Source: Rebecca billardiae RCC1528
Lineage: Eukaryota > Protista > Haptophyta
Direction of reading: 5' to 3'
DNA length: 64,000 nucleotides
Assembly: GCA_965240325.2 (NCBI GenBank)
Contig: OZ251243.1
Span: forward strand, 558,001 to 622,000
Position numbers and translations under genes: made by a program
Shown: in pieces, positions 13,063 through 62,370 of the stretch
Position numbering within the stretch: position 1 is the first letter of the stretch
Layout: each line of letters opens with the position of its first letter
Notes under the pieces: model-generated
What the model was told of the DNA's origin: nothing
Database searches by the model: none
The model's input: only the letters and a program-made list of their open reading frames with translations

Positions 13063-15018
13063 CCAGGTCGTTCCCCGTGCACTGGGAATCCGCGGTTTCG
13101 CCCTATTCAGAGCGCGAGGCCGCGGCATAGCAACGCAGATTTAGTCTTCCGCTTCGTCTATCAGACCACTTGAACGATCTAATCGAGCTTTCCAATTGAA
13201 AATGACGAAACTAGATCCATCCATTGGAGAAGCCAAATCCCGAGCGCGGCAAAGCCGTGGAACGCAGTAATCAGCCTCGTCAGCGATAGTCCGCTCACGA
13301 AATCGATCATCGATGCGCTGGAAATGAGTTCTTCGTGTGCAACCTGGAGGCGGGAGCCCTCCGCCGCGGGTGCGGAGCACCGATTCTGACCCGCCCCCTG
13401 CGGCTGCGGCCGGGCACGAGTGCGATGCCGCTGGCCCCGGCTGGGGGGCGCGCCCGGGCCAGGGCACTGCGGGCGCGGATGTGCTCGCGGAGCCGGCGTG
13501 CGTGGACGGGCTGTTGCGGGAGAGTATCTGCCGCCCTCCTGCGCCGTGCGACTTGCGCCACGCCTCTTTCGCCTCGGCTCAGGGCAGCGCACACGCGCGC
13601 GCCGCCTCCGAAGGCCAGCCTTGCCTGCGCCGCAGCCGGTCGCGCGCGCGCCGTGCGCGGCGTGGTCGGGAAGGAACGGGGGGTGCTGCCGGGCGAGATG
13701 GCGACATCATGTGCGCACGCCATGCCGCCGCGCCACGCCTTGCCGAGCGTGTCGCCGGTCCGTTTGCACGCCTCTTCCAGTTGTCACAAATGGTGTCAGG
13801 TGTGCCGCACGGCCTCGCGGTCAGGACCGCTGGGGGGCGCGCCCGGGCCAGGGCGCTGCGGGCGCGGATGTGCTTGCGGAGCCGGCGTGCGTGGACGGGC
13901 TGTTGCGGGAGAGTATCTGCCGCCCTCCTGCGCCGCGCGACTTGCGCCACGCCTCTTTCGCCTCGGCTCAGGGCAGCGCGCACGCGCGCGCGCCGCCTCA
14001 AGGCCAGCCTTGCCTGCGCTGCAGCCGACCGCGCGCGCGCCGTGCGCGGCGTGGTCGGGAAGGAACGGGCGCGGCTGCCGGGCGAGATGGCGATATCATG
14101 TGCGCACGCCATGCCGCCCCGCCACGCCTTGCCGAGCGTGTCGCCGGTCCGTTTGCACGCCTCTTCGAGTTGTCACAAATGGTGTGCACGCGGCCTCGCG
14201 GTCGTGACCGCCTTGTCGGGACGATCATTGAGACACAGAACAGTGCCAGACGGGCACGCGGGAAACTCTTACATGAATGTTCATCACTGCGTGGTCATGT
14301 AGAAGTGCTGGGTGCGACGCTTTCCTCGCGCGGATGCACTTTCATCATCTTCTTCGAGCTCAGGTCTGGCTTCAGGCACGACAAGAAAGCAGCACTCGTC
14401 AACAGCTGTGCGGATCCGTTATCGTGCCCTTTCGCGGCGCCGCGGGGCGGCATGGCGTGCGCACATGATGTCGTCATCTCGCCCGGCAGCACCCCCCGTT
14501 CCTTCCCGACCACGCCGCGCACGGCGCGCGCGCGGTTGGCTGCGGCGCGGCAGTGCTCGGGCCTCGAGGCGGCGCGCGCGTGCGCGCTGCCCTGAGCCGC
14601 GGCGAAAAGAGGCGTGGCGCGAGACGCGCGGCGCAGGAGGGCGCCAGATACTCTCCCGCGACAGCCTGTCCACGCAAGCCGGCTCCGCGAGCACATCCGC
14701 GCCCGCAGCGCCGTGCGGCGTGCCCCGGGCGCGCCCCGCCAACGGCGCTCGGCCGCCTTGCCGCTGCCCGCCTGCCGCCGAGGGCAAAAGGTCAAGATTT
14801 GGTCGGCCCTCGCCTGCCGAGCCGCCACCGGGGGCTCCGCCCTGCCTTCTATCTCGTTGCGGCTCAATTTTGGGATTGCGAGACCAGCTCATCGATTGAC
14901 GCACATCCGCACCCGCGAGACCTGAAAATCTTATTCGCGGGTAGCGACGGGTGCGTCCTGCGGCTGTTTTTCTCGTATGTCCAAACCGCGGATTCCCAGT
15001 GCAGGGGGAACGACCTGG
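13063..15018. mobile_element. Non-autonomous TIR (fold-back-like) DNA element, ~1.96 kb, TA-flanked
   Basis: 36-bp TIR CCAGGTCGTTCCCC(G/C)TGCACTGGGAATCCGCGGTTT with 1 mismatch; TA on both sides; internal direct repeats of 389-bp period (13441-, 13830-) plus an inverted copy at ~14446-14738; no transposase. Confidence 0.9.
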
Positions 15019-17959: not shown

Positions 17960-18620
17960 GCGGCGAATTCCCGCGCCCCGACGGGCGCGGCGTCCACGCC
18001 CACCGCTGTGGCCCTTTGGAAGTGCTTGGTGTCGTATCATCGTGACGACGGCCGCTGACTTGAAGCAGCGCGGGAGCTCGCGAGCGGTCCCGCCTCGGGA
18101 GGTCGCCGGTGGCTCTCAAGATCGGCATTCGTGAGCGAATGCGCGCGGGTAATTTCGCCGAACGAATGGGGGAAACCATTGGGGGGTGGTGCTCGCCACC
18201 GAGAGCGGCCGGGGCCCCGCCGCGAGGGCCATCGCACCCCCCCCGCACCGCACCCCAACCCTAGGCCATGCCCACCCCGCCGACTAAACTGTCAGGAGGG
18301 TGGGAGGGCAGGGAAGGAACCTTCCCAGGGAGAGGCAGCCGCCAACGCGGAACGCCGCCGCGACTGGGCCCGCACCGCGCGCGCGCGGCTGCATGCGTGC
18401 CGGCGCGGGTCGGTCCGGGTCAGGCTGCGAAGCACGGCCAAGTGCTGGAGCGACACGTGGCCCGCCTGGAGGGCTCCCGCCTGCTGGGCCCGGACGGGGC
18501 TGCCGGTGAGCTGTACCGGCATAAGCGAACGATTATGCAACCACAGTTTATTAAGAATAATGAGACGCACACGTAGTCCGGCACGTAACGTAGTACACCG
18601 GGTCACAAATTCTGGCAGGC

Positions 18621-18780
18621 AGGCCTGAGCTCAAGCCATTCTATCGTGTTGCAGGCTATCAGGCTATGCTCTGCCGCCACCAACGCCGACTTGTCGACGA
18701 TCGGGAGCTGCCGCCGACGAATCACGAGAGCTGCGCCGTCCCACCTAGGTGTCGTTAAATTCGGAAACATAGAATGAGTC
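18621..18780 (+). mobile_element. Unclassified dispersed element, copy A (3' fragment)
   Basis: Aligns by eye to the reverse complement of 23213-23350 and to 30683-30747 and 61140-61229 (core GACGAATCAsGAGA...TGTCGTTAAAT..CATAGAAT). Confidence 0.85.
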
Positions 18781-22970: not shown

Positions 22971-23212
22971 GCTGCCGCCGGGGGAAGCATCATCAGCCGC
23001 CTGGGCGCGGAGTCCGCTGGACTCTCCCGACGCTGCTGCCGTCGGGCGTGTCGGAGAGGCACGCGGTCGCTCTGACGAGAGGCACAGTCTGGCGAGTCGC
23101 AGCGGTGCATCGCACCTTTGTCGGGAGGCGTCTCGCCAGTCTGTGACTACTCATACTGACTGTGTCTGTGGGAGCGCCTTCGGCCACAGCTATTGCGCTG
23201 ATAAATTTATTA

Positions 23213-24430
23213 TAACGACACAGGTAGGACGATAACGCGGGTCTCCTGATTCGTCCGGGCGGCAGTGCCCGATGCCTTGTCGACACGAAGTCGGCGCTGG
23301 TGGCAGAGCATAGCCTGCACCGCGATCGTAAAGCTTGAGCGCGGCCTTGAGCTGCTGAACTTGAAGCGCGATCCACCTGCGCTGCGCGGCTCGCATGGAT
23401 TGCGCTGGTTTTTCGGCGGCGCTCGGAAGTCGGAAAAGATCGAAGAAAGAAGACGAATATAAACTGTGCCCTGGCGGGCGGGGGGGTCGGCGGGCCGTGC
23501 CAGTGCTGTCGCAATGTATCCTCTGCGGGTTCGCGTCTTTCCACATTCGCTTGTGGCCGTGGGTGACGGACAGTCGAGTGCAAGGACCAGTGACACGTGA
23601 AGTTGGCTCCCCGACGTGTACACGTCTCAGTCTGTCACTCTTATGCGCATCAGCGAGGCCCCACACCCACGAGGGAATGTGCAGCACGCGGGGCGGGACG
23701 GGTAGCCCGTTGCTCCGCGCGAGCGCGGGTACGCGCTGTATGTGCCGCATCTCGACCGCGATGGCGTAATCGAGCGCCTCGCCGCCGCCGAAGCCGCCAG
23801 AGTAGATCATGTGCATGTCCTCCTGCCGCCAGCCGAGAGCGGTCGTCGCGAGGATGCTTGCCGATGTCCGCTCCAGGCACGATGGGCTCGGCGCAGGTCG
23901 CGTTGACGTCGTACACGGCCGCCACGCTGAGCACGAGCGCGTTGACGTTCACGCGGTCGTCGCTCTTCGCATCTTTCGACAGGTCTGGCGCCTGCGTGCT
24001 CGGGGGCACGAGGAGCTGTTGGTTGTGCGCGCGCGCGCGCCACAGCGACAGCGTGTGCCACTCGCGATCGAGAGTAGACAAGCGCTGCTCACGCGGGCAC
24101 ACGAATCGCAGCGCATCAGTCACCGGCGTGACGACTTCCGCCTCGTCCCGCAGCGCCTGCGCCATGGACGAGGATGACGCGGCGATGTTGCATGCTCGAC
24201 GTTTCATCTCTCTGCGGATGGCATCACGGGCTTGTCTGTGTCGCGCTGCGGCGAGGGTCGCCAACTCGCGATGACGCGGTTGCTGCCACGGCGACAGACC
24301 CGGGAGGTGCGTCGGTTGCTGCCACGGCGACAGACCCGGGAGGTGCGTCCGATATGTTTTGCGCCCGCATGCATGCACCGCGGCGCGCGCTCGCTCGGTC
24401 GGGAGCGACGCAAGCTCGGACCTTGCCAAC
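23213..24430 (-). pseudogene. Unclassified dispersed element, copy B, with a frameshifted homolog of ORF 29147-30250
   Basis: Shared terminal DNA motif at 23213-23300; peptides APDLSKDAK, EPIVPGADIGKH, IYSGG and HIPSWVWG match AADLATQAK, EQIVPDINKY, IYSGG and RVPHNLWG; frameshift near 23855; 36-bp tandem duplication at 24277-24348. Confidence 0.65.
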
Positions 24431-28104: not shown

Positions 28105-29146
28105 TGTTGAACTAGTGATGCCTGATGGCGCGGCACTCACTAGTCACTGCTGCGTCTGCGCCGTCTCGTCCGCCGCTGCCCCGTCATAACTTACATATGA
28201 GTCTCAGTCACTCACTACAACTTGAACGCTATACTGAGTATACAGTATGAGTATACAGACACAGTCACTCACTCACTCACTCACTCACTCACAGTCAGTC
28301 ACAGTCACACACAGACAAGCCTCACACTCACACTGGCTGTCAGTCACAATTCACCGAGCCGGAAGGAACCGTGTCTCAATTTCAAACTCTCAATCAATAA
28401 ACGACTGTTTGATCAACCAGCCACCGCGTACCGCGAACCGCTCTGATTCTTCGGTTCACTGCGGCCCGAATAAGTATTATAATTAATATTATAAGTAAGA
28501 CTCGGACGGACTGAGCCAGCCGCGGCGAGATCGATGAGTCGGCCATGTCTTCCAGCGCCTCGCGTTCGCGAGGCGTGCCCGAAACAGCTACACACTCACC
28601 GGTGCCCTGGGGCACCGGCGCAACCCGCATCCAACACTCCGCATATCGCAGACACGACATATCCACCCGCGCTTGCACACGCACGCCCCCCCCCCGCCTG
28701 CTTGCTGACCATGAAAGGACTGGCCCCGGGTGCGGACGCCAAGCGCATGCTCATCCCGACACGACGGCGAACACCTGCGGTGTGCCTGTGCGGAGGCACT
28801 GGGGAGCGACACGCGGAGTGTGGGCCGCCCTCCTTCCTGAGCAGCGCCCGGCCCTCAGGTGGAGACCGCGCCCGTCCCGGCCTCCCCGCGGCGGCCGCGA
28901 GCCCCCCCCCCCCCCCTTTTCCCCATCCTGCCCGTTTCGCGACAAACCCCTCTCCCCCCGAAACGCACGACGGGCCGCCGTGGTCCGGGGGACCGGCGGG
29001 GCCACTCCGGACCTGGGTTTTGAAATTTGATTTCAACCCCGCGCGCCGAAATGCCTTTGGCACCAGCACCGACCTCGCTCGCACCGCAGTGCTTCCGCAC
29101 CCGCCCCCCGGCCCTCCGCAGCCCCGCGCCCGCCACACCGGCCACC

Positions 29147-30250
29147 ATGCCCCCTTACCAGCACGGCTTTTTCCGCGACCGTCTCAACAGCAGGAGCGCC
29201 TTGAGCTTCTTCCCCTCTTCCAACAACTTCGAGCGCGGGCTGCAGGTGGAACGGCCGAGCACCCCCACCGCCAGGCGGGATGCGGGCCAGCAGATGTGCA
29301 CGACGATGATCAAGCTGAGCGCGCGCTGCCTGAGCGACGTGGCGCCCAACTCGCAAGGCGGGCGACTGCTCTCAGGACTCACCCAGGACCCCAAAGGCAA
29401 TAAGCACGTTTTCTCCTTCACCGGCTCGGTGCTCGAGAACATGACCATCTGCCGCCGCCTGGCCACCAGCCTGTGCATGCCGAACATTCTCACGGCGTGC
29501 ACCACGGAGCTCACGCAGGAGATGCTCGCGCTGTCGGCGGCCGACCTCGCAACCCAGGCGAAGGACGTGTCCCTCACGCTCCCGGTTAGCCCCACGATGA
29601 CGCTCGTGCAGTTTCACAGGGCCCTCTACGAGCAGATCGTGCCCGACATCAACAAGTACGTGACCAACGGTGAGCACGTCGAGACCAACATCTACTCCGG
29701 CGGTGTGAACCTGATCTTCCTCCGCCTGCGTTTCATGCCCATCGACCCCGAGCACCCCATCTTCTTCGCGCCGCTCAAGCCGAGCCGCCGCATCGCCGGC
29801 GCCGCCCGCGTCCCACACAACCTGTGGGGCGTGCCGCCCGCGCCGCCTGTGCCGCCCGCGCCGCCCGCCGCTGCGCGCCGCCCTGCTCCTCAGCCGGCCG
29901 ACCAACAGGCGGCGGACCCCGCCGGCCCGGAGGCGGAGGAGCCCGAGGGGGAGGGTTCGGACGATGCCATCCCGCCACCCCAGCCACCAACCGCGGCCGC
30001 GCCGTCGGACGGGCCCGAGGTGCAACAGGCCAGGCCGGCGCTCGGGGAGTCCAACTACCGCCTGGTCCTGCCCCCCGGCGCCGCGGCAGCCGGCAAGCGC
30101 GCGGCGACCGAGCCGTCCACGCCGGCGGAGGAGGATGGGCCCTCCTCCGCTGGCGGGAGCGACGCCAAGCCGGCCAAGCAGGCTCGCACCGCGTCCCTCG
30201 GCGACCCCCCCCGTGACCTGGCTGCCGCCGCGCCGCAGTCGCTGGCGTAG
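29147..30250 (+). CDS. Uncharacterised intronless protein inside element copy C (alternative ATG at 29051)
   Basis: GCCACCATG start; strong C/G third-position bias; ~230-aa globular region followed by a Pro/acidic tail; degraded paralog at 23.6-24.3 kb. Confidence 0.8.
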   Translation: MPPYQHGFFRDRLNSRSALSFFPSSNNFERGLQVERPSTPTARRDAGQQMCTTMIKLSARCLSDVAPNSQGGRLLSGLTQDPKGNKHVFSFTGSVLENMTICRRLATSLCMPNILTACTTELTQEMLALSAADLATQAKDVSLTLPVSPTMTLVQFHRALYEQIVPDINKYVTNGEHVETNIYSGGVNLIFLRLRFMPIDPEHPIFFAPLKPSRRIAGAARVPHNLWGVPPAPPVPPAPPAAARRPAPQPADQQAADPAGPEAEEPEGEGSDDAIPPPQPPTAAAPSDGPEVQQARPALGESNYRLVLPPGAAAAGKRAATEPSTPAEEDGPSSAGGSDAKPAKQARTASLGDPPRDLAAAAPQSLA

Positions 30251-30309
30251 AGCCGCGCGCGGCGCTGGCGCGCCAGACGCGCCCGGTTGGGCAGCGCAGG
30301 CACCCTCAG

Positions 30310-30430
30310 CGGCCAGGACGACGACTTCCTCAACGGCAAGGGCGACGACTTCCTCTGCGGCCAGGGCGACGACTTCCTCAACGGCAAGGACGACGACTTC
30401 CTCAACGGCAAGGGCGACTACTCCCTCAAC
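30310..30430 (+). repeat. 24-bp minisatellite x~5 (CGGCmAGGrCGACGACTTCCTCAA)
   Basis: Direct reading; encodes G(K/Q)(G/D)DDFLN in the same frame as the upstream ORF. Confidence 0.95.
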
Positions 30431-31130
30431 TCGGCAAGGCCACTAGGCCGCGCACACCGGCCCGGGCGACCACATCCACTACCTGCACTACGGCATCAAC
30501 TTGAACAGCCTCGGACGACGACGACACGGGCAACTACATGATGACCAAGGCCGACGACGACTGCAAAACAGCGGCATCCCCGGGCGCCTACTACCTCAGT
30601 GACCGTGTGATCAGCATCGGTTACGACGACTCCCTCACCCGCGGCCAACGCGCTCCGACATCCTCCATTAACTCCATTCAGTACTTCGACAGACGAATCA
30701 GGAGAGCTGCGCCCTCGTGCCTGTGTCTTTAAATCATAGAATTAGTCACGGACCGCGTGTCGGTCCGGAGCTAAGTCAACCTTATTCAGGGTCGAAGGCG
30801 GGGCCCAGCTGAACGCCAGCTGAACGCGTGACTCCAGGGTCTGAGATCGGGCGAGCCCTCCACAAGGCCGCTCCGACCGGTAGTCCGTACCCACAGCAGT
30901 CCCGCGACCGCGGCGCCGCCACGCCGACGCGGGGCGCGGGCGCGCGGTCCGGGCCGCGCGCAGGCCGCACTCGCCGCTCCGATGAGCAGAGCAAAAGGGC
31001 GTAGATATACGCCAGAGAGGTTTTGCCAGAATGGCAGCGAGCGGGACAACTCCACCGGGGAGCGCCCCGCCCGCAGGATGTCGCGTGCCCTCCCAGGGTC
31101 ACTGGTCATCGGGCACAGCCGACCGAGCGC

Positions 31131-48857: not shown

Positions 48858-49473
48858 TATTGGGTAAACGCGAGCTCCGAGCGCCTCGAGCCCTGCTAAG
48901 TGCTAAGAGCTCACCGGCGCGTCCTCGGGCGCGTCGTCGATGTTGACCACGAGAGGCAACCTCCTTCCCTTCGCTCCTTTACGAAGACAAGCTAACCTCC
49001 CGCCGACCTTTTGGTCGCGGGGTGACCACGTCGCGGCCGGCTCCGGGGAATGCGTTACCTTCCCGAAAACCGCCCGTCCCGACGTAACTCCCGGACGTCC
49101 TCGTCCGTCCACCCTCAGCCGGATTCCCACTTTTCCGAAAGTGGAAATCCGGATGGACTCCCACGATGGCGTCCGGGCCATGCCCGTGCGACGTCACCGT
49201 GCCGCGCTGCGCCGGGCCGTACCGCCCGCGCACGCGCCGCGTCCGTGTCGCTCCGCGTCCGCGCTGCCGCGTCCGCGCTCCGCGTCCACGTCGATCCGCG
49301 CCAGCGCTGCTGCGCTCGCGCTCCTGCCGCCGCGCGCGCCGCGCGCGCGCGCCGCCAGCCAGCCACTGCTCCGTAGCTGATGACGCCGGCCCGCCTGGTG
49401 CGGCGCCGGCCCTGACGTCCCAGCGGCGACGCCATCTGCTGAGATGCGCGCCCCAGGCCGCGTCAGCTCAACA
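48858..49473 (-). repeat. 3' LTR (616 bp)
   Basis: Direct repeat of 55406-56014; carries an extra TGCTAAG duplication and one substitution seen by eye. Confidence 0.95.
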
Positions 49474-55406: not shown

Positions 55407-56182
<776 letters not shown>

Positions 56183-60810: not shown

Positions 60811-61229
60811 ATTATAATTATAATTATAACTCACTCTACACTGGTCCGTCGGCTCTCGCGCAGGCAGACCGATGACCGGCGGCACCAGGACCCGGTGGCC
60901 GGTCCCGGAACTAATCTGACTCCGCGACGTGCCCCAGCCGCCTGGCACTTCACGGGCAGACGGGCGACGGCCAGACAAGTGAAGACTGAAGACAGTGACC
61001 AGCACACAGGGACCGTCCCGTCACGACGGTCACGGAGTCTCGGACGGCCTCCTCACTCTCAGCAACAGCGGTGCACACTGAGCCCGGGTCTGGGACGCGG
61101 TCCCGCGGGATTTAATCAATGGGTTGCGTCGCTGCTGCAAGTCTTCGTGTCGACGATCGGGCACTGCCGCCGACGAATCAGGAGACCCGCGTCGTCCTAC
61201 CTGTGTCGTTAAATCGTCATAGAATGAGT
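60811..61229 (+). mobile_element. Unclassified dispersed element, copy D (internally deleted)
   Basis: Left ATTATAATT..ATTATAA, GGC(G)AGAyCGATGA, TCCCGwCACGACGG and CGGAGT..GG.CG.CCTCCT patches are shared with 28475-28835; 3' motif shared with copies A-C. Confidence 0.7.
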
Positions 61230-62370
61230 GCAAGGCTTGCCCGCGAAACGGCCGGTTTGACTCGATCACCGCTCTTCCTCCACTTACAGCACCACTACCA
61301 GCTGGGTCCACGGTCGGCCGTCAGCCACTCACTGCTAGACACTATAGACACTGCTCCGAGTGCTTCATGATCCAAGGAGACCTTAAAGACCCCTTGCATG
61401 ATCATCAGCTCTGCACTATCATGCACTGATGCACTTGATGGCTACTAGGTGCGGCGCTAGGCCGGAGTGCCAGAATCCGTAGTATCTATTATTTATGATA
61501 CCGGTAGTGATAGTAGGCAGTGTCGTTCCTGAGTCAGGGACCGGGCCGCCAGTCATGTGTGCTGCACAACTCGTATGGACGGGCCCGGCCCAGGCGGCTC
61601 CGGGCCCGGGCGTGTCCGCGGGCCGACTGGGCCTGGCCGTCGAACCGTCGCTGCGCTCCCGGCCGGTCGAACTTCTGCCTCAGGCCTTACTGGCCCGGCC
61701 TCTCCCGTGGCTGGCAGGGGACGGCCGCCACCGCCGCCAGGTCTCGATCGCCGCCGGGATCCGCGCGATGCGTGTCAGGAGTCACGAGCCGACTTGGACG
61801 GCTGGCACGAGCCTCTCAGGACCTTTTGTGCACTCTCTGGTGCTCTCTGCGAAAACGCACGGCTGCTTCAAGCCCGTTACTGAACTCAAGGCCGCCAGTT
61901 TGGGGCACCATTACGTCATATTCTGGTCTGTCAGCGTCTCAGCTTGGCACGTCCATTTACGCCCGCCGAGCTGCCATCTACACCCTGTGTCCGGACTGGC
62001 GTGTGGGGACTCCGTGCGAGGCATGTGGCGGCGGCCACGACGTCGACTTGAGCAGCATGCTTGCGCACGGCCAAGCGATGAGAAAACTACCGTTCCACTG
62101 CCCGGCGTAGCCGACGCGGGCGGGACTCTTCACATGGCTCAAGGGCTACGTACACTACAAGTAGCCGGTTGGGCTGGCCGCGCCCGCCGGCCGTCATTCG
62201 TTCTTTGGGCTTTGGCCCCCAAGACAGTGGCCCAAGCGGGCCAAGCACGCACTTTTGTAACCGTCGTGCAGTGCTCGCCGTACATACGGAGTCTGTTACA
62301 CGGACCCAGCGGCCGGAAGCTGGGCTCGTTCGTGAGCTTTGCACCCGACTCGCGCCCCCCTGGTCGGGGC

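Follow-up and report, generated by a model that had tools for sequence, protein, structure and literature searches.

Copy C, a full-length retroposon of 2.2 kb that carries an open reading frame (ORF), lies at positions 28512 to 30747 on the forward strand of a 64,000-nucleotide stretch of the genome of the haptophyte Rebecca billardiae RCC1528 (GenBank assembly GCA_965240325.2, contig OZ251243.1, positions 558,001 to 622,000). This whole stretch, referred to below as the window, corresponds to C26:558001-622000 in our numbering, in which C precedes contig numbers and L precedes the numbers of loci. The genome comprises 72 Mb on 41 contigs and has a GC content of ∼68%. Copy C begins with a 5′ untranslated region (UTR) that is without codon periodicity (28512–29050, forward strand). 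The ORF is in the sense orientation between the 5′ and 3′ UTRs; it spans 29147–30250 on the forward strand and encodes 367 amino acids, or 399 amino acids from the in-frame ATG at 29051, before ending in a TAG stop codon. The last segment of the element is a tail module (30692–30747, forward strand) that recurs at three other places in the window, which are called copy A (18621–18780, forward strand), copy B (23209–23399, reverse strand), and copy D (61143–61229, forward strand).

An earlier note on this DNA, made from the letters alone, had reported a motif recurring at four sites in the window, and counts of the 14-nt core of this motif, GACGAATCASGAGA, bear out the report. The core is found at window positions 18716, 23242 (reverse strand), 30692, and 61172, compared with 0.73 occurrences expected, and none of 100 shuffled sequences contains four or more matches. 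Across the genome the core occurs 720 times, and a reversed control pattern does not occur at all. Copies A, B, C, and D can be aligned across ∼60–90 nt and terminate in ...GTGTCKTTAAATC(n)CATAGAATKAGT(C). In copy C, the shared 3′ tail consists of the core GACGAATCAGGAGA and a possible hairpin, followed by AAATCATAGAATTAGTC. These ∼57 nt are the only part that copy C has in common with the other three copies. A consensus fold of the tail, derived from six sequences, contains 15 base pairs, three of which show compensatory changes. The pairings are GACGA/UCGUU, CAGG/CCUG, and GAC/GUC, and the last of these stems is GAG/CUC in copy C, with both sides changed. The covariation support from these six sequences is modest, and we describe the tail as a conserved module that may form a hairpin. 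No instance of the tail pattern was found in the metagenome contigs searched.

Copy C belongs to a real and very young retroposon family. More than 40 copies are 98%–100% identical, and in every family copy the homology ends at window position 30747 (...CATAGAATTAGTC). The 5′ ends of full-length copies are ragged, falling at 28532–28543 or further upstream. Another ∼35 copies have differing 5′ truncation points that range from 28590 to 30641, with the same single, fixed 3′ end, and the size of the family is about seventy copies genome-wide (33 full-length and ∼35 5′-truncated). In a protein-level search of the organism's own genome, conducted with E values up to 1, all 53 candidates were scored. 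The whole N-terminal domain is present in 33 copies on 20 contigs, each with a frame that stays open for 397 amino acids or more, of which 27 are 99%–100% identical and six are 94%–95% identical. A dozen truncated copies start at residues 8, 103, 127, 130, 139, 160, 161, 173, 174, 177, 181, and 192. Between subfamilies the 5′ UTR diverges by ∼6.5%, compared with 1.6% for the ORF, which has accumulated neither indels nor stop codons.

The earlier note had given the span of the element as 28475–30747. Its right end agrees with the position defined here, whereas its left end does not. We place the start of copy C near 28512 because a comparison of 5′ junctions revealed a CCAGCC motif near the 5′ start that is common to copy C, to subfamily 2, and to a 362-bp family described below; a flanking duplication, ACGGAC, abuts this position. 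The same note had seen no terminal inverted repeats (TIRs), long terminal repeats (LTRs), poly(A), or reverse-transcriptase, DDE, HUH, or YR motif, and a search for end repeats as well as searches of Pfam, NCBIfam, and PHROG lead to the same view. The ends of copy C have no terminal direct or inverted repeats, single copies have no pseudo-LTRs, and poly(A) is absent from copy C. Rfam matches, including the hammerhead ribozyme and a head derived from tRNA, 5S, or 7SL RNA, were found neither in copy C nor in the 362-bp element at E values up to 10.

One contig in the run of X2, a differently labelled second organism, has an exact 209-nt match to window positions 30434–30642, which lie in the 3′ UTR. 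Given this match, the 2.2-kb family, or the species itself, may be present in another sample.

Marks of insertion are visible at the borders of copy C. The hexamer ACGGAC occupies 28506–28511 on the forward strand, and a matching hexamer occupies 30748–30753, directly after the last base of the element. The element at 28512–30747 is thus flanked by a 6-bp target-site duplication. Other family copies have target duplications of 4–6 bp that start with AGTC, plus one of 32 bp. An unanchored search for target duplications, based on the longest common substring, was negative except for one 32-bp case. When the flank matches are anchored at the 3′ junction, their mean is 3.39, compared with 2.30 for re-paired flanks, and none of 200 re-pairings reaches 3.39. 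This excess is due to an AGTC pattern at the 5′ junctions: AGTC is present in the upstream flank, no more than four bases from the 5′ junction, at 10 of 30 insertions, whereas the 96 positions nearby predict a frequency of 3.3% (p = 2.4e-8). AGTC also forms the element's own last four bases. At the AGTC insertions, the next one or two bases equal those after the element end (AGTCT, AGTCTA, and AGTCA). The 50 bp upstream of insertions have an AT content of ∼50% compared with a background of 35%, and the base immediately downstream of the element is A in 8 copies, C in 12, and T in 10.

At loci L024, L050, L041, and L012, truncated C copies adjoin the tail end of a different element, and stacked tails exist at many places in the genome. 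At C15:747279-750883 (L021 and L022), two truncated C copies are arranged in tandem with a 32-bp sequence between them. The same 32 bp also precede the first copy; this unusually long target duplication stops precisely where the second copy starts.

The window copies represent at least three families that have only the ∼57-nt tail in common: the 2.2-kb family (copy C), a 362-bp family (copies A and B), and an 87-bp family (copy D). The earlier note had proposed a single mobile family whose members would be coding, decayed, or deleted. The dispersed nature and recent activity of these elements hold, whereas the single family gives way to several that share a tail. The 362-bp element, exemplified by L024:1123-1484 (C12:2052638-2052999), is noncoding and resembles short interspersed nuclear elements (SINEs). 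Its copies in L024 and L050 are identical across 365 bp, and a search with its 5′ 208 bp yielded, from 299 candidates, at least 40 copies that are 100% identical and have the same start base. This uniformity points to a very recent burst of the family.

Copy B, an older member of the 362-bp family, is 87.7% identical to it across 187 bp and has lost its terminal CATAGAAT, in keeping with the earlier description of this copy as one without that end. Copy A, likewise old, is a diverged or 5′-truncated member with 77%–83% identity. In a search with copy A, all 39 other matches begin at query positions 310–360, and 34 of them begin at 322, which corresponds to window position 18621; these matches coincide with the 3′ parts of 362-bp copies. 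Copy D lies between two occurrences of GCAAG (61137–61141 and 61230–61234), a 5-bp target duplication. Its family yielded 572 candidates, and the 40 that were scored are 93%–99% identical; all have the same first base except one, which begins four bases earlier. Together, the 362-bp and 87-bp families make up most of the 720 tails in the genome, and they do not contain the ORF.

Two earlier proposals that linked these copies more closely to copy C were not sustained. Copy B had been thought to hold a frameshifted homolog of the ORF, but the peptides concerned (IVP.., IYSGG, and ..WG) are encoded at 23669–23883 on the reverse strand, inside a separate repeat. When these peptides were aligned with the ORF, 39 of 300 shuffles scored at least as high in a single-frame alignment, as did 18 of 200 in a frameshift-tolerant alignment. 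Formal alignment, which the earlier note had itself named as decisive on this point, therefore finds the similarity between the B and C peptides not significant. The separate repeat runs from window position 23461 to at least 23900 on the reverse strand and ends in ...GGCACAGTTT at 23461. It yielded 917 candidates, and 39 other scored copies are 91%–100% identical. A string from this repeat, CACAGTTTAT, is also present upstream of copy A, at ∼18542–18551. Copy D had been described as joining left-end patches of C to the shared right end; the best local alignment of the sequence upstream of D with the body of C has a score of 23, and 76 of 300 shuffles are as good.

The intact frame of ∼367 amino acids that had been reported in copy C is open throughout 29147–30250, and it is intact in 33 copies. 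In its N-terminal 235 codons, the GC content at codon positions 1, 2, and 3 is 0.58, 0.47, and 0.91, values that resemble those of a host histone H4 exon (0.67, 0.48, and 0.89), whereas both UTRs are flat for GC by codon position. The host-like GC content at third positions (GC3), set against the flat UTRs, therefore identifies the ORF as a genuine coding sequence. A comparison of the two subfamilies (window 29147–30192 versus L033, L035, and L038) reveals changes in 16 codons. All of the non-synonymous changes are located in codons 5–115, with one synonymous change there; codons 123–349 contain no non-synonymous and four synonymous changes. This distribution suggests that the N-terminal domain is evolving fast.

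More distant relatives of the protein exist in the same genome. Four sister families (C7:597111-597422, C29:951173-951478, C14:1651756-1652049, and C1:2111086-2111334) have kept residues 13–121 at 35%–45% identity in open frames. The 5′ UTR, which is shared with related families at 75%–77% identity, is also found at that identity in three of the four, and the fourth has a tail core 500 bp downstream. Because the sister families keep the N-terminal domain together with the 5′ UTR or the tail, the orphan protein is, on this comparison, a long-retained part of the element lineage.

Outside this genome the protein appears isolated. Domain searches gave no match in Pfam, NCBIfam, or PHROG, and a comparison with the PDB gave none either. 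A word-based search of 5.8 billion clustered proteins produced no homolog, and no relatives were found in the ESM Atlas, in metagenome contigs, or in viral contigs. A HMMER search of 1.84 billion representatives returned one marginal match (E = 5e-5) to a repeat protein; it was rejected because four repeat units inflate the score, which does not reflect homology. The C-terminal 130 residues are rich in Pro, Ala, and Glu, and half of the protein is of low complexity. An AlphaFold model built from the single sequence, without an alignment, is poor (pLDDT 42). No nuclease, polymerase, or recombinase motif was detectable in the protein by any search.

Coding-like sequence continues downstream of the ORF. 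Five 24-bp tandem repeats at 30304–30427 on the forward strand encode (GDDFLNGK)n in the ORF frame past the stop codon, with a GC3 of 1.0. Codon periodicity in the ORF frame runs past the TAG to ∼30430 (within 30248–30541), and beyond it a unit similar to the GDDFLNGK repeats, GYDDSLTRGQ, is read in a different frame as far as a TAA within the tail. The stretch either remains from an ancestral ORF of greater length or extends the protein by read-through.

It is possible, if on balance doubtful, that the protein binds the element's own RNA, as the ORF1 proteins of long interspersed nuclear elements (LINEs) do. A more specific proposal, which we regard as rather unlikely, is that the protein is a new retroelement accessory protein, unrelated to ORF1/Gag, that binds RNA in cis and helps an element without a reverse transcriptase (RT) to compete for the LINE enzyme. 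If this were true, then the fast-changing N-terminal domain would reflect an arms race, and the (GDDFLNGK)n sequence behind the TAG could possibly be reached by read-through.

To identify candidate partner enzymes, the genome was searched with the PF00078 (RVT_1) profile, which matched 55 places that fall into about seven groups. RT groups 1, 2, and 4 are of the LINE type and have long intact ORFs; among proteins of solved structure, R2 and L1 ORF2p match them best. Group 4 additionally contains RNase H. Leading candidates for the partner are groups with ORFs of 2170 and ∼2090 amino acids, for example at C5:284276 and C35:789110. Two groups have short ORFs of 575–585 amino acids with weak RVT_1 matches. 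Group 3 was rejected as a partner on account of its terminal repeats, which mark it as an LTR element, and group 5 was rejected as an RT–RNase H of the LTR/DIRS type with a YLDD motif.

A fixed 3′ end, 5′ truncations, ragged 5′ ends of full-length copies, short duplications, and target microhomology are the marks of LINE-type retroposition. Copy C is probably a young, non-autonomous, protein-coding retroposon that is moved in trans by LINE-type reverse transcription. Mobilisation had earlier been attributed to an unknown mechanism or to an enzyme acting in trans; the evidence favours action in trans, and the marks of LINE-type retroposition speak against an unknown mechanism.

The proposed cycle would begin with transcription from the element's own 5′ end, starting near the CCAGCC motif. 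A LINE-type RT encoded elsewhere would recognise the last ∼57 nt of the RNA (the core, the possible hairpin, and ...CAUAGAAUUAGUC), and the enzyme would nick the target, in many cases immediately upstream of an AGTC. The terminal AGUC of the RNA could then pair with the nicked DNA, whereupon target-primed reverse transcription would begin. The pairing of the L1 poly(A) with a T-rich target follows the same principle. Copying would often stop early, which would yield 5′-truncated copies, and a second nick 4–6 bp away would create the short target duplications. Elements end in AGTC or GAGT, and old copies could therefore serve as new targets. Such a supply of targets by element ends would explain both the head-to-tail stacks and the truncated C copies behind other tails. 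Because all three families have the same tail, the 2.2-kb, 362-bp, and 87-bp elements would be expected to compete for one enzyme.

Several observations weigh against LINE-type movement in trans. Approximately two thirds of the insertions have no clear target duplication. The stability of the tail hairpin, calculated for single sequences, is no better than that of shuffles (z −0.3 to +1.6). Transcription of the element, and hence an RNA intermediate, is presumed. The codon changes between the subfamilies, 11 non-synonymous and 5 synonymous, are weak evidence for purifying selection. The search for a partner also counts on this side, as no RT-encoding element with this tail was found. Tail positions were listed for contigs C1 and C3, where RT groups 2 and 4 have no copy; within 10 kb downstream of the RT hits on these two contigs, the 14-nt core was found in 0 of 5 cases. 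Group 1 and the two short-ORF groups are consequently disfavoured as partners. Scanning of the RT loci L051-L081 likewise revealed no tail downstream of an RT. When a pattern that excludes the abundant families was used, 38 tails were recovered, none of them adjoining an RT. The 5′ part of the 362-bp element, used as a lead to the partner, matched only further copies of the 362-bp element. Homologs of the ORF are not located beside an RT either, as all own-genome matches belong to the C family or to sister elements of the same layout. The one tail end among these RT loci, in L074, is an unrelated tail ∼190 bp upstream of a LINE fragment.

Other routes of movement would account for parts of this pattern. 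The partner enzyme could come from a Penelope-like element, in which case the family would still move via RNA. Penelope-like elements are typically truncated at the 5′ end, occur as partial copies in head-to-tail tandems, and have short target duplications of variable length, all of which are seen here, and the two unclassified short-ORF RT groups are present in the genome. However, neither copy C nor the 362-bp family has a hammerhead or any other Rfam match even at the permissive threshold used, and the one copy of each short-ORF group on C1 or C3 has no tail within the 10 kb downstream. We consider a Penelope-like source of the enzyme unlikely. The main rival is movement as DNA by a rolling-circle/HUH mechanism (Helitron, Helentron/HINE, or IS91-like), with an enzyme that cuts after AGTC. 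Such an enzyme would fit the presence of AGTC both at the element end and at the insertion point, the lack of target duplications in most copies, the possible hairpin ∼20 nt before the element end, the head-to-tail arrays, and the joining of different cargo to the same ends; moreover, the genome encodes five intact Helitron-like Rep ORFs of 2606–3640 amino acids. Yet the model requires an initiating 5′ end, whereas in this family it is the 3′ end that stays constant, and the 5′ ends form a continuous series. Truncated copies also have the upstream AGTC, as expected of a target duplication but not of end recognition, and duplications of 5–6 bp and of 32 bp exist. The ends are not of the TC...CTRR form, nor are the insertions bordered by A and T. 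No Rep match has been placed beside a tail; none of the five is on C1 or C3, the contigs with listed tails. Taken together, these points make rolling-circle movement quite improbable. The Rep matches themselves lie at C39:342498, C7:282420, C13:616682, C23:65118, and C33:783174, and are far longer than the usual Helitron proteins.

Finally, the element could be autonomous, with the 367-amino-acid orphan protein itself catalysing transposition in a novel way. Each of the 33 full-length copies has the protein intact, its N-terminal 110 amino acids persist at 35%–45% identity in the four sister families, and no known domain accounts for it. Against this, the short families, which hold most of the 720 tails, have no ORF, and the tail alone is thus enough for spread. 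The absence of a detectable nuclease, polymerase, or recombinase motif and the low-complexity Pro/Ala/Glu composition of half of the protein also argue against a catalytic role. An autonomous element is, in our judgment, very improbable.

The LINE-dependent retroposon that we favour can be compared with several known systems. PMC5786205 describes the tail of SINEs as derived from the LINE 3′ region and as the part that the LINE machinery recognises. Copy C resembles the SINEs of such 'stringent' pairs in that its family has an invariant 3′ end, 5′-truncated copies, and target duplications of a few base pairs, and in the combination of unrelated bodies with a conserved 3′ module and no RT of their own. 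For copy C, the sharing of the tail with a LINE is presumed; sharing is known here from the short families. Unlike the SINEs of stringent pairs, copy C is 2.2 kb long and protein-coding, and it has no tRNA, 5S, or 7SL head; the RNA polymerase III head of classical SINEs is accordingly missing, as judged by the lack of Rfam matches. Like the mammalian HAL1 (half-L1), copy C is non-autonomous, has one ORF and no RT, and would need the enzyme of another element. The HAL1 ORF is recognisably L1 ORF1, whereas the ORF of copy C has no detectable relative in the LINEs of this genome or in databases, and none of the 53 candidates scored links it to the ORF1 of a partner LINE. Unlike HAL1, copy C also has no poly(A) tail.

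Like the C family, Helitrons, Helentrons, and their non-autonomous HINE derivatives lack TIRs, frequently insert without a target duplication, form head-to-tail arrays, and combine different cargo with the same ends; their hairpin close to the 3′ end has a possible counterpart in the tail. The C family differs from Helitrons and Helentrons in its variable 5′ end, its short target duplications, and the lack of a known Rep-encoding copy with the tail; its ends are (G)CCAGCC.../...TTAGTC and not the TC/CTRR ends with A–T (or T–T) insertion of Helitrons. Penelope-like elements and retrozymes resemble the family of copy C in being truncated at the 5′ end, in forming partial tandems, and in having short target duplications of differing length; copy C differs from them by having no hammerhead motif and, in single copies, no pseudo-LTRs. 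The lack of terminal direct or inverted repeats separates copy C from LTR, DIRS, and TIR elements.

Two further features of the window were recorded. Positions 48901–49200 and 55442–55741 are identical 300-bp direct repeats located 6541 bp apart, which are probably LTRs. A cluster of 94%-identical direct repeats with 389-bp spacing, together with inverted repeats of 110–113 nt, is present at 13440–14715.

The literature located on mobile elements of haptophyte-like or GC-rich marine algae consists of general surveys, and such elements are almost undescribed. In this genome, three very young families appear to depend on one 57-nt tail, and an active RT should accordingly exist in the genome and should be identifiable via the tail. 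The 87-bp family would, to our knowledge, rank among the shortest retroposons. The presence of individual copies probably varies between strains, and the elements could serve as markers. For genome annotation, the 33 intact ORF copies are to be treated as transposon genes and not as host genes. The protein-coding member would indicate that a parasite of LINEs can retain its own gene, one that does not come from any recognisable LINE gene.

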